A program made the position numbers and the translations under genes. 64,000 nucleotides of DNA from Blastocystis sp. Blastoise. Lineage: Eukaryota; Protista; Bigyra: Opalinata. Below, piece by piece: positions 39,164 to 63,800 of the stretch. Location of the stretch: NCBI GenBank assembly GCA_039096225.1, contig JBBPEB010000002.1:682001-746000 (forward strand). The letters are read 5' to 3'. Under the pieces are notes generated by a model. The model was given only the letters and a program-made list of their open reading frames with translations. It did not search any database and had not been told where the DNA came from. Each line of letters starts with the position of its first letter. The stretch's first letter is position 1.

Positions 39164-40055
39164 ATACATTCTTTACCATTCTTAGTTTTTTCTTCTAGAT
39201 TCATTATATTCTTATTATTACTATCTTTATTCATATCTATATTCATATTTTTAAAAGAGTCCTTATTTTCATCCATAATTAAAGGATTCTTTTTTATAAA
39301 AGTCTTTGATTCACTCTTTTCTTCCATTAATCCGTCATTATTATCTATGATACCATCATTCATAGATTCTAATTGATTAGAAGAATCATCTTGTCTCTCA
39401 AAAGATGATTTTTCTACAGGATGTGTATCAAAGTCATTCACTTGGTTTCTCTCAATACCAAGTTTGACTTGATCATTATATAGGGGAATATTAATATCAT
39501 TATTTAGATTAGTAACTAATTTGTTAGAGTTAATATCCATGACGGAACACGAAGAAAAAGAAAATTCATCATTTAGAATTTTGTCATTTTCATCAATTTC
39601 ATTATTCAAATTTGTTCCATGATGTGGCCAATGGTTTTGAACAAAACCTGTGGTTCTCTTTTCATAAGGTTTCCCTTTATGAAAATGATTACCAAAACAT
39701 CTGGGAGCAAATGAGAAGGAAATTTGATTTTTAGTAGAGCAAAGTCCCAAGTGAGAATTTGAATTTTTGGCTAAAATTTGAATTTTACCAAGAGTTTCCA
39801 ATTGATAGCGTGTTTTATAGACATGCCACCTTGAACTCTTTGAAGGGTTAAAAGTAGACGAGGAGAGGACCAACTTGTTAACAGATGTCGACATTCGTTG
39901 AATTACATGAACCTTTCGGAGCAGGAGCAACGACAGCGGATTTCTTTCATGAGTAATCACCTTCATCTTTTTAAGTTGTCCGTTGATCTCCAAACCACTT
40001 CCAAAGTGATCCTTATCGACCATAGACTATATAAAAATAAACAAAAATAAAATTA

Positions 40056-40078
40056 CGCCTTGACCCGGGATCGAACCA
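40056..40078 (-). other. tRNA 3'-end fragment (T-loop/B-box plus acceptor 3' strand) at array junction 1
   Basis: TGGTTCGATCCCGGGTCAAGGCG, similar to the eukaryotic tRNA-Phe 3' end (CTGGTTCGATCCCGGG....GGC). Confidence 0.75.
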
Positions 40079-41963
40079 ATTAATTTAAACAAGAGAAAAG
40101 AAAGATAAGGAACAGAGAAACACAAATAAAAATAAAATAATAATAAAATTGAGAAAGTCAACTTTATTTTAAGATCAAAAACTAAACAAAAACTCCATGT
40201 CAGCATGGAGAAAAAGACATCCAAAGAGGGACGTCAAAAACAAGAATTATATAAAAAAGTTTTAGTTTTTTAATTTTTTGCCTATAGGACAGGATAGGTA
40301 GGAGTTTTTGATCTATATAGTTCCTAACTATATATATGATAAGATATCTATATATATATATATCTTTAGATAATATAAAATTTATGATAATAAAATTAAA
40401 GAAATCTTATATTATTAATAAAACAAAGGTCATAATATTATATTTATATATATGTATATATATATAAATATAAGGCATAGTAATATATTATATAAAAAAA
40501 TATTATAAAAAAATATTTTAATTTTATTATTAAAATTAATTAATATTATATTAAAATATGTCCTATTTTAAATTAAATAAAATTATAAGATAAATATATA
40601 AAAGAAAAATAAAATATGGTTTATATATATATATATAGAGGAGAGGAATCTATATATATATATATATACAATATATATAAAAAAATTAATGAATTGTATT
40701 AAAAAGTGATAATAGAGAGAAAGAGAGATCAAAATAGAATAAAAAAGATGGATTTAATAATGAGATGAAATAATTCATCATATGAGAATAAATAAGTTTT
40801 GGATGAAAAATATTTAAGAGAGAATCAGTTAATAGAATATAGAGTATATGAGTAAAAATGAGAATCATGATTTTGATAAAAGTATAAAAATGAAGATGAA
40901 AAATAAGAAATATGAGAATATTTATTTAATAAGAAATGTAATAATGGAAGTAATGAACAATATCATTGCCAAGGAACACAATCATGTGCGCTTTGAATAC
41001 TGAGAAAAAACGATAATAATGAGAAGTATATTGAAAATTTTAGTATAAAATGATGTATAAGTAGTAAAGTAGAGAGACTTATGAAAATTGGAATATATAT
41101 TAATATGAAGGGTAAGGAGTAGTATATAATGAAATTTTAAAATTTTTGAAAACTCGATATTTTTAAGTTAATTTCGGTTTGACTTAGTAATAGGAGAGAT
41201 AATATGAAAACATTAAATTAGTTCTCTTGACTCTATTAGAATTCTAAATTTGAAGAAAACAACTTATTTGTAGTTGATAGATATCCTAGTTGGATTTTAT
41301 TGTGTTTTGGAACACAAATAAGGAAATTAATTTTTTGGGTAACTTAGTCAAAATTTTGAAATAGTGAAAAATATCATAAAAAATGAAATTTTCAGAATCA
41401 AGATTTGAATGATAAATAAACCAAATATAGCTCAATACAAGATGTTTGAGGTATAATAGAGCCTATAAGACCATCTAGAAGGTAATGAAAAATCGATTTT
41501 AGAGAGGACGTCTATATGAAAAAGTATATCTAAAAGTATATATATATTCCAAAACATAAATTGATTTCCTGATTCCATTAGAGTTCGAAATTTGAAAATT
41601 TCAATTGATTATATATATATAAATAGAATATCAACTATTAATTGTGTTTTGGAACACAATCATAAAATTTTGAATAAAATTGATAATTAATACTATATAT
41701 AAGGTATGTATATAAAATCTAGTAAAATTGAAGACTTCATTTAACATAAAGATAATTACATATAAATCATAGATATTTGAATAGAATTGATAATAGAAGA
41801 ATATAATGAAGAAATAAGAAGAAAATGATTGATTTAGAGTATATATAGAAATATGAATTTTGAAAATAATATAGAATGAAAAGTAGAAGAGAATTGAAAA
41901 TAAAAGAAAATAAATGAATAAAATATCAATAAAAGATAAATTAATATGATATATTAATTTAAA

Positions 41964-60790: not shown

Positions 60791-60822
60791 AGACTATATA
60801 AAAATAAACAAAAATAAAATTA

Positions 60823-60845
60823 CGCCTTGACCCGGGATCGAACCA
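60823..60845 (-). other. tRNA 3'-end fragment at array junction 3
   Basis: TGGTTCGATCCCGGGTCAAGGCG. Confidence 0.75.
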
Positions 60846-63800
60846 ATTAATTTAAACAAGAGAAAAGAAAGATAAGGAACAGAGAAACACAAATAAAAAT
60901 AAAATAATAATAAAATTGAGAAAGTCAACTTTATTTTAAGATCAAAAACTAAACAAAAACTCCATGTCAGCATGGAGAAAAAGACATCCAAAGAGGGACG
61001 TCAAAAACAAGAATTATATAAAAAAAGTTTTAGTTTTTTAATTTTTTGCCTATAGGACAGGATAGGTAGGAGTTTTTGATCTATATAGTTCCTAACTATA
61101 TATATGATAAAATATCTATATATATATATATCTTTAGATAATATAAAATTTATAATAATAAAATTAAAGAAATCTTATATTATTAATAAAACAAAGGTCA
61201 TAATATTATATTTATATATATGTATATATATATAAATATAAGGCATAGTAATATATTATATAAAAAAATATTATAAAAAAATATTTTTATTTTATTATTA
61301 AAATTAATTAATATTATATTAAAATATGTCCTATTTTAAATTAAATAAAATTATAAAATAAATATATAAAAGAAAAATAAAATATGGTTTATATATATAT
61401 ATATAGAGGAGAGAAATCTTATATATATATATATATATGTATATATAAAAACATTATTGAATTATATAAATTTGTGATAATAGAGAGAAAGAGAGATCAA
61501 AATAGAATAAAAAAGATGGATTTAATAATGAGATGAAATAATTCATCATATGAGAAAAAATAAGTGTTGGATGAAAAATATTTAAGAGAGAATCAGTTAA
61601 TAGAATATAGAGTATATGAGTAAAAATGAGAATCATGATTTTGATAAAAGTATACAAATGAAGATGAAAAATAAGAAATATGAGAATATTTATTTAATAA
61701 GAAATGTAATAATGGAAGTAATGAACAATATTATTGCCAAGGAACACAATCATGTGCGCTTTGAATACTGAGAAAAAACGATAATAATGAGAAGTATATT
61801 GAAAATTTTAGTATAAAATGATGTATAAGTAGTAAAGTAGAGAGACTTACGAAAATTGGAATATATATTAATATGAAGGGTAAGGAGTAGTATCTAATGA
61901 AATTTTAAAATTTTGGAAAACTCGATATTTTTAAGTTAATTTCGGCTTGACTTAGTAATAGGAGAGATAATATGAAAACATTAAATTAGTTCTCTTGACT
62001 CTATTAGAATTCTAAATTTGAAGAAAACAACTTATTTGTAGTTGATAGATATCCTAGTTGGATTTTATTGTGTTTTGGAACACAAATAAGGAAATTAATT
62101 TTTTGGGTAACTTAGTCAAAATTTTGAAAAAGTGAAAAATATCATAAAAAATGAAATTTTCAGAATCAAAATTTGAATGATAAATAAACCAAATATAGCT
62201 CAATACAAGATGTTTGAGGTATAATAGAGCCTATAAGACCATCTAGAAGGTAATGAAAAATCGATTTTAGAGAGGACGTCTATGTGAAAATGTATATATA
62301 AAAGTATATATATATTCCAAAACATAAATTGATTTCCTGATTCCATTAGAGTTCGAAATTTAAAAATTTCAATTGATTATATATATATAAATATAATATC
62401 AACTATTAATTGTGTTTTGGGACACAATCATAAAATTTTGAATAAAATTAATAATTAATACTATATGTAAGGTATATATATAAAATCTAGTAAAATTGAA
62501 GACTTCATTTAACATAAAGATAATTACATATAAATCGTAGATATTTTAATAGAATTGATAATAGAAGAATATAATGAAGAAATAAGAAGAAAATGATTGA
62601 TTTTGAGTATATATAGAAGTATGAATTATTAAAATAATATAGAATGAATAGTAGAAAAAGAGAAGTTGAAAATAAAAGAAAGTAAATGAATAAAATATCA
62701 ATAAAAGATAAATTAATATGATATATTAATTTAAATTATTGAGATATATTATTATTATTATTATTATTATTATTATTATTATTATTATTATTATTATTAT
62801 TATTAGAATCTCTTAAATGAGTAGAAATAGTATGACTATCAGGAAGAGATTTTAACCAGAATTTATATGACCAATCTAAGATAATATTATTTAATATAGA
62901 AGCATAATAAGATACATTCTTCTTAGAAATATCTAATATCTTTCTAAGATTAGTTAAAGTATCTTTAGGAATAACTCCAGAAGAACCAAAGATTAAAGAA
63001 TAATTACTCACTCTATAACCATTATTATTCAATATTTCTATTACATTATCATAATCATGATCTTTCTTCTGTTTCATTGTTTGAAGAGGATCTATTTGAT
63101 TAGAAGATCCTTCATATGCTATACCTACATCTGCTATTATTATATCTTTGTTATTTGGATTTGTAGGAATAATTACTATATCAGGACGAAGATTATTCAT
63201 ATTTCTATTAAATATATCATTACCAAAGGAAGTTGATAATGATTTATCTATACTTATTCTATATTCTCCTAATTTATATTTTCTTATTAATTTCTTATAT
63301 AAGTTATTTAATATTTGATTATGTCTATTTGTAATTAAAACACCTATTCCATTATTATCTGTAATTCTATCACATGTAGTAAGAATATGATTCAAATTAT
63401 GAATAGCTCTCTTATTATGTTCTAAACAATAAGGACAAAGAGCTTCAGTATCATTAATCTTAGGAGATCTCTTCTTATTATATAAGAAAGATTGAGAACC
63501 AGTAAATGCTGTTCTCATTCTTATATTGATTAAAGCAGAATATTTCATAGGATGACATCTCTTACCATTAAATAACCATCTATTACTTTCTATATTATTA
63601 TCTAAATATTTATAATAATAAGTATTCTCATAATTATTTAATAATTGTTTTGAATGTTTCTTCTTCAACAAATTATTAATTTCTTTACATATCATTCTTC
63701 TTACTTTCTCATAAGGAATAGTAGTATTTAATTCAGGAATATCTTTATCTATTAATTTTATTTTAATACCTAAAGATATATCATTAGGATCTATATAAGC

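Follow-up and report, generated by a model that had tools for sequence, protein, structure and literature searches.

The 64,000-nt stretch of the Blastocystis sp. Blastoise genome analyzed here (hereafter the window; C15:682001-746000 in genome coordinates) carries a head-to-tail array of a retrotransposon, which we call the Phe element. Very probably, this is a sequence-specific retrotransposon of the non-LTR type (LTR, long terminal repeat) with a restriction-like endonuclease (RLE), the sole target of which is the tRNA-Phe(GAA) gene; a 22- to 23-bp target duplication would leave a complete tRNA gene in front of each new insertion, and the arrays would grow at that head. Genome searches covered 33.3 Mb in 34 contigs.

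A 22-nt GC-rich motif occurred exactly three times in the window, always on the minus strand (40057-40078, 50166-50187, and 60824-60845; spacing 10,109 and 10,658 bp). It had no match across 100 shuffles of the window, the GC content of which was approximately 22% on average. Read on the minus strand, all three junctions showed the same order: AT-rich 3′ untranslated region (UTR), motif, a single G, and the element start (GTAATTTTATTTTT...), with an ATG 33 nt past that start. Poly(A) was absent from all three junctions, as was a 5′ tRNA half (a tRNA search found no tRNA there). Motif count and junction reading thus agreed with a preliminary description of this DNA, made from the letters of the window, which had placed the motif at every junction without poly(A) and without a tRNA 5′ half.

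The motif corresponds to tRNA-Phe positions 51-72, comprising the end of the T-stem, the T-loop (B box), and the 3′ strands of the T-stem and the acceptor stem. Its 21-nt core was found at 15 genome sites, namely 7 complete tRNA-Phe(GAA) 3′ ends and 8 orphan remnants. The seven genes were identical, and a genome search with the 5′ 46 nt of the tRNA returned just those seven, without any orphan tRNA-Phe 5′ half. The host tRNA that had been postulated from the motif therefore exists. In six of the seven genes, the first base of the element directly followed the discriminator base G73; the remaining gene (C25:44575) was empty and continued into the trailer GATTTCTTTTT. All seven tRNA-Phe genes, the empty one included, showed a C5-A68 mismatch in the acceptor stem and a discriminator G.

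The six occupied loci, located on three contigs, shared one architecture; the order that insertion leaves is flank, complete tRNA, at least one element each ending in a remnant, and native trailer. In the window array, the intact tRNA-Phe lies on the minus strand directly upstream of the unit that crosses the window end, approximately 7 kb past the window end (C15:752962-753034; window-equivalent positions 70962-71034), where the preliminary description had suggested looking for it. When the genome was searched with the terminal 182 nt of the element and with its first 205 nt, 8/8 of the 3′ ends and 12/12 of the 5′ ends lay at this tRNA-Phe site. Each end adjoined a tRNA-Phe gene or a remnant at one identical base, the junctions being base-precise; the sole variation was in the length of the T runs of the leader. 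All nine copies bearing a reverse transcriptase (RT) at an identity of at least 98% fell within the six occupied loci, and no solitary or RT-bearing copy was found in the genome away from tRNA-Phe sites. The trailer of the empty gene was found again after the last remnant in arrays C4a and C4b, the two with an intact tail, and so the remnant reads as a 22- to 23-bp target duplication extending from T51/G52 to G73. The earlier proposal that the last 22-23 nt are duplicated is consistent with these products, from which the nick positions were deduced.

Other relations between the element and the tRNA were rejected. Each array has one tRNA, the upstream flanks differ up to the tRNA, and one gene is empty, which argues against a tRNA carried by the element. 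An LTR element with a primer-binding site was discarded because the motif is tRNA-sense on the coding strand and lacks the CCA complement, and because repeat mapping found no LTRs, the units adjoining directly. A tRNA-like fold of the element 3′ end was likewise rejected: the last 145 nt, including the remnant, showed no significant fold (z = 0.45).

Judged from these products, the endonuclease would nick the bottom strand in the T-stem, between tRNA positions 50/51 or 51/52, and the nick would prime reverse transcription. The top strand would be cut 22-23 bp downstream, right after G73. Repair would then duplicate T51/G52-G73: the upstream copy would complete a full-length tRNA gene, and the downstream duplicate would remain as the 23-bp remnant behind the element. 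Among the first 24 nt of the element are T4 and T5-7 runs, starting at +4, in the place of a T5 run in the native trailer; the leader runs may replace this native T5, so that the occupied gene would keep its RNA polymerase III (Pol III) terminator. The sense strand of each unit contained 25-28 runs of T5 or longer, the first at +10, and Pol III therefore cannot transcribe the element. Since the complete tRNA at the head would be a fresh target, arrays are expected to grow at the tRNA-proximal end, with the oldest copies distal and decaying. The preliminary description had also assumed that the upstream tRNA is left intact and a target regenerated, and complete genes do head the arrays; the target hit again would be the full tRNA at the head rather than the 23-bp remnant alone.

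Repeat mapping resolved the window array, which lies on the minus strand, into two complete units (A and B), a unit C crossing the window end, and a fragment D. Unit C measures 10,139 bp in total, from 60824 to window-equivalent position 70961; its 3′ part occupies 60846-64000. Unit B (50166-60823; 10,658 bp) has a body of 10,635 bp (50188-60822), and unit A (40057-50165; 10,109 bp) has a body of 10,086 bp (40079-50164). The three 23-bp tRNA-Phe 3′ remnants (T51-G73), identical to the 3′ end of all seven tRNA-Phe genes, mark the junctions of unit C (upstream) with unit B (60823-60845), of unit B with unit A (50165-50187), and of unit A with fragment D (40056-40078). Fragment D consists of approximately 2 kb of the 5′ end of a unit, the remainder and the 3′ end being absent. 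Its first part (39164-40055) corresponds to the 5′ 893 bp of a unit with the second of two N-terminal modules (variant 2) and is 98% identical to the start of unit B, and its second part (31820-32889) corresponds to unit B nt 901-1970 (96% identity). A foreign insertion of 6.3 kb (32890-39163) separates the two parts. Thus, of the four same-orientation units first described, A, B, and C stand with the spacing reported, but "unit D" is only a 5′ fragment.

Other repeats were observed in and around the arrays. The insertion within fragment D is AT-rich and almost without open reading frames (ORFs), and approximately 1.1 kb of it is 82% identical, in reverse orientation, to DNA on C23, 1.4-2.5 kb upstream of the tRNA-Phe there, which points to a further repeat family associated with tRNA-Phe/element loci. 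A 2.7-kb repeat at 25950-28675 recurs at 91-94% identity at least eight times within the broken element of array C4a, with further occurrences in arrays C23b and C15b, and probably represents a further mobile element nesting in the arrays. In array C4a itself (C4:1500000-1590000), one element copy is stretched over 84 kb by many nested insertions and a 32.6-kb internal duplication, yet its boundaries persist: tRNA-Phe on the head side, and the remnant with the native trailer on the tail side. In array C23a, an insert of approximately 2.45 kb delimited by inverted repeats of approximately 500 bp (99% identity), probably a DNA transposon, interrupts the second unit (C23:80161 onward) after approximately 120 nt. 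Elsewhere in the window, a tRNA-Asn(GTT) on the minus strand (1755-1828) has an ordinary T-run trailer and no element behind it.

An intact copy of the element measures approximately 10 kb and comprises a 33-nt leader, one ORF of approximately 2,700 aa, and a 3′ UTR of approximately 1.9 kb that lacks poly(A). The single ORF starts at nt 34 in two copies located outside the window (2,684 aa and 2,717 aa), and in units A, B, and C the same frame is broken into three or four pieces. The pieces lie at 49239-50132, 46598-49171, and 41964-46577 in unit A, followed by its 3′ UTR (40079-41963), and at 59927-60790, 57831-59936, 55930-57834, and 52069-55329 in unit B, all on the minus strand. What look like three ORFs per unit are accordingly parts of a single long frame that is whole in copies elsewhere. 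The frame breaks in the window units may represent real decay or homopolymer errors of the assembly.

The order within the ORF is a long low-complexity N-terminal part, two short conserved blocks, the RT, a CCHC zinc knuckle, and the RLE. The RT domain of unit A (ORF3 aa 693-961; 43695-44501, minus strand) matched RVT_1 with E = 2.4e-33; its best solved relatives were R2 proteins (E = 1.6e-37), followed by LINE-1 ORF2p. By its sequence the RT is of the non-LTR (long interspersed nuclear element, LINE) type. The CCHC knuckle and a PD-(D/E)XK RLE were assigned to ORF3 aa ~1306-1459 of unit A (42201-42662, minus strand) from motifs and predicted fold. The C-terminus showed CCHC, RH(N/D), PD, D/E, and K...Y motifs in register with R2-like proteins, with which it shares the invariant residues C, C, H, C, RH, PD, K, Y, and G. 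When this part was modelled with AlphaFold (predicted local distance difference test score, pLDDT, 78), the top seven Foldseek matches were all R2 structures (E 3e-8 to 2e-5), followed by viral PD-(D/E)XK cap-snatching endonucleases. The assignment of the C-terminal part as a putative RLE thus holds, in agreement with the first reading of the window as an array of RLE elements. No apurinic/apyrimidinic endonuclease (APE) domain was detected, as Pfam gave no Exo_endo_phos match.

The N-terminal 700-900 aa exist in two non-homologous versions that have only the first 12 residues in common, as a comparison of window positions 57831-60790 (unit B) with 46598-50132 (unit A) showed. Variant 1 is present in unit A, and variant 2 is present in unit B and fragment D. 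Because both versions insert at one site, target choice does not depend on the N-terminal part. In two hybrid copies, C23a_u1 and C23b, one version gives way to the other after approximately 70 nt. A tandem repeat with a 9-bp period (48169-48681), located in the low-complexity N-terminal region of the unit A ORF, encodes (I/T)TP-type tripeptides. Upstream of the RT, conservation with a sister family in the same genome is limited to the two blocks of 100 aa, and Pfam gave no match in the first 1,800 aa, including no cysteine-protease domain upstream of the RT. The conserved blocks had weak or no Atlas matches; the cysteines of block 1 were not kept in the sister family, and the model of this block had a pLDDT of 41.

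Over the last 4.2 kb, units differed by 0.6-1.9% pairwise, with 26-78 substitutions between units within arrays. Neighboring units may carry different N-terminal modules, and the two neighbors in array C4b, with 73 differences in 4.2 kb, belong to the most divergent pairs. Within the RT-RLE coding part, 15 synonymous and 5 non-synonymous variants were shared by several copies (ratio of non-synonymous to synonymous polymorphism, pN/pS, 0.08), and 16 synonymous and 17 non-synonymous variants were private (pN/pS 0.25). Because the shared variants are mostly synonymous, the copies appear to stem from functioning, replicating lineages rather than from duplicates decaying in place. Four occupied loci have 0.6-1.4 kb of upstream flank in common at 81-99% identity, with elements that are 98-99% identical; the flanks being more diverged than the elements, the insertions appear younger than the flank duplication. 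The fragmentary unit was the one farthest from the tRNA in all four arrays having one, and in the window array private substitutions numbered 4 in unit C, 3 in B, and 11 in A, followed by the broken D. Both patterns fit repeated insertion into the complete tRNA at the head.

Several observations weigh against this interpretation. All three window units have broken frames, and no N-terminal DNA-binding domain was identified with Pfam, Atlas, or AlphaFold. Array C4b lacks an age gradient in its private substitutions (17 vs. 13), and damage there affects the unit next to the tRNA, which has an internal duplication of 390 bp and a broken ORF. The patterns of shared variants are reticulate, so that recombination or gene conversion between copies also occurs. 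The arrays were read from the assembly sequence and the nick positions from the products, and these products fit equally well an element RNA that itself carries the 23 nt.

The last point is the basis of an alternative without any target duplication, in which the element RNA ends in a 23-nt tail derived from tRNA-Phe, serving for instance in homing or annealing, and the element inserts exactly between G73 and the trailer. The final products would be identical to those of duplication, and all eight remnants are mutually identical, as a conserved functional tail would be; R2 RNAs, moreover, use flanking target sequence for precise priming. We nevertheless regard a carried tail as improbable: if the bottom strand were nicked at 73/74, the exposed primer would be complementary to the trailer and the tail would be of no help in priming, and the tail together with the 3′ UTR end lacks the significant fold that was sought. 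The 23 nt never vary, whereas the surrounding 3′ UTR varies within the pairwise range given for the units, but a stretch of this length would be expected to show only about one difference by chance.

The mode of array growth can also be explained otherwise. If the arrays were chiefly copies of a single old insertion, multiplied by unequal crossing-over or segmental duplication, the mutual closeness of units C and B (26 differences in 4.2 kb), the upstream flank common to four loci, the reticulate variants, and the 32.6-kb duplication inside array C4a would all be accounted for. Units C and B, however, have non-homologous 5′ modules, the C4b neighbors rank with the most divergent pairs, synonymous changes strongly predominate among shared variants, divergence is far greater in flanks than in elements, and the partial distal units of four related loci differ in type and break point, all of which make this origin quite improbable. 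That the assembly made a head-to-tail array out of a single-copy insertion is extremely improbable. The array is indeed known from the assembly, and its frames are broken at low-complexity tracts, which are prone to long-read errors; against this, six separate loci on three contigs show one architecture, units within arrays differ by tens of substitutions and by whole 5′ modules, and the published assembly was described as contiguous and complete (PMC12129017). Target duplication followed by insertion at the head tRNA remains the reading that we prefer.

An unlikely extension of the preferred reading is a two-way adaptation between element and gene. The conserved first 24 nt would terminate the rebuilt tRNA, an RNase Z cut of a tRNA-element co-transcript, falling exactly on the first base of the element, would make the 5′ end of the element RNA, the head copy alone would be competent, and a 23-nt read-through tail would anneal to the nicked T-arm for precise priming. 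The 5′ end of R2 RNA is made by a hepatitis delta virus (HDV)-like ribozyme, the analog of the RNase Z cut proposed here.

The closest database proteins (46% identity) carry the name Blastocystis sp. Blastoise, and this genome encodes them at 100%; a dictyostelid origin, which poly-Asn proteins and a GC content of 22% might suggest, was rejected on this ground. These proteins belong to the sister family, present as 11 copies with a spacing of approximately 8.6 kb. The sister family also has two N-terminal versions, which are 40% identical. In the RT tree, the Phe family, the sister family (P0001), P0003, and P0004 formed one group (support 89/86) outside a cluster of 11 R2-like proteins (98/97), including two labelled R2DM; the group and the cluster were both separate from APE-type elements. 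P0003 and P0004, the closest proteins from outside this genome, are encoded on contigs from other samples with 24-26% GC. Both are Logan contigs (of ERR13998690 and ERR13998818), and each opens within the 3′ end of a tRNA (L042:1-30 and L044:1-25); a T run comes next, and the ORF lies approximately 100 nt further on. This tRNA 3′ end resembles that of tRNA-Lys(CUU), and the present genome has 14 copies of a tRNA whose 3′ end is nearly the same. Rfam gave no match on the contigs of the relatives. The habit of adjoining a complete tRNA 3′ end thus appears to be common to a small clade with P0003 and P0004. In the more distant marine relative P0007 (L046), a poly(A) tail is present and a tRNA flank absent, and the tRNA habit is therefore not general among more distant kin. 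On L044, at nt ~355-380 upstream of the called P0004 ORF, a GNTCYINS-like motif similar to the Cys box of ubiquitin proteases was seen by eye, without Pfam support.

With six of only seven tRNA-Phe genes occupied, the load would be tolerable only if insertion spares the gene. The Phe element would thus offer a clean natural case in which a retrotransposon, having cut within an essential low-copy gene, restores that gene exactly and renews the target that it uses. R2-type proteins are already under development for site-specific gene insertion, which makes a relative with precise, full-length, target-regenerating insertions in tRNA genes worth biochemical study. The elements are not mentioned in the genome paper on tortoise Blastocystis isolates, from which the words retrotransposon and tRNA are absent (PMC12129017). 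They extend the short list of tRNA-targeting RLE elements by a small clade, including two relatives from other samples located behind complete tRNA 3′ ends.

Among known systems, the Phe element has the characters of the RLE-bearing non-LTR group (R2 / NeSL / CRE / R4 / Hero), as far as motifs and predicted fold indicate: RT, CCHC plus RLE, no terminal repeats, a fixed 3′ end, and a target duplication. Within this group, the comparison with the NeSL/Utopia clade drew on the published statement that its members target tRNA genes (PMC4640811); some of these members have a cysteine-protease domain upstream of the RT, for which Pfam gave no match in the Phe element. It resembles R2, for which solved structures (8gh6, 9dou, and 9nl2) gave the best sequence and fold matches, in its single ORF with an RT followed by a CCHC knuckle and RLE, in base-precise 3′ junctions without poly(A), and in having no evident promoter of its own. 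In contrast to R2, it targets a tRNA gene rather than 28S, duplicates 22-23 bp rather than a few bp, and has an ORF approximately 2.4 times longer in which no N-terminal zinc finger or Myb was found. Membership of the R2 clade was rejected because all copies lie in tRNA-Phe genes and the RT falls outside the R2-labelled cluster; on sequence criteria, the element is not a member of R2 proper.

Unusually long target duplications, made by two far-apart nicks, have been described for other RLE elements: R9 of bdelloid rotifers duplicates 126 bp of its 28S target (cited in PMC13580325), and reptile Utopia duplicates 20 bp in U2 small nuclear RNA (snRNA) genes (PMC4640811). Their targets differ, being 28S and U2, and no restoration of a complete functional gene ahead of the element is reported for them.

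Mobile elements of other types also exploit tRNA genes. The dictyostelid elements TRE5, TRE3, NLTR-A, and DGLT-A find safe havens in the tRNA genes of a compact AT-rich genome (PMC5006619) and, like the Phe element, leave the tRNA gene intact. They insert outside the gene, however, at distances from 2-6 bp to approximately 100 bp, via the Pol III machinery, and they use APE endonucleases or integrases without a sequence-specific RLE cut inside the gene. An assignment to the dictyostelid TRE/NLTR type was rejected, as the Phe element carries an RLE instead of an APE and inserts within the gene. Dada transposons occupy fixed sites inside tRNA or snRNA genes (PMC3706591, PMC8869645), but they are DNA transposons with a DDE transposase and no reverse transcription.

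The nearest parallels are the NeSL-related RLE elements specific for tRNA genes, namely NeSL-1_TV (tRNA-Pro, Trichomonas) and LIN15_SM (tRNA-Arg) and LIN25_SM (tRNA-Glu) of a planarian (Kojima & Jurka 2015, PMC4640811). All three are RLE-type, lie at a fixed position inside a tRNA gene, and have a 3′ junction followed by the 3′ part of the tRNA. LIN15_SM seems to duplicate a long piece of the tRNA as well (supplementary alignment, PMC4640811). It joins, however, at the D/anticodon-stem region, and its upstream tRNA copy ends before the acceptor 3′ strand, so that the tRNA gene is destroyed, whereas the duplication of the Phe element reaches exactly G73 and the whole gene is rebuilt. Thus, tRNA-specific RLE elements as such were already known from NeSL-1_TV and LIN15_SM; what appears to be new is a duplication that ends at the discriminator base and would thereby rebuild the whole gene.

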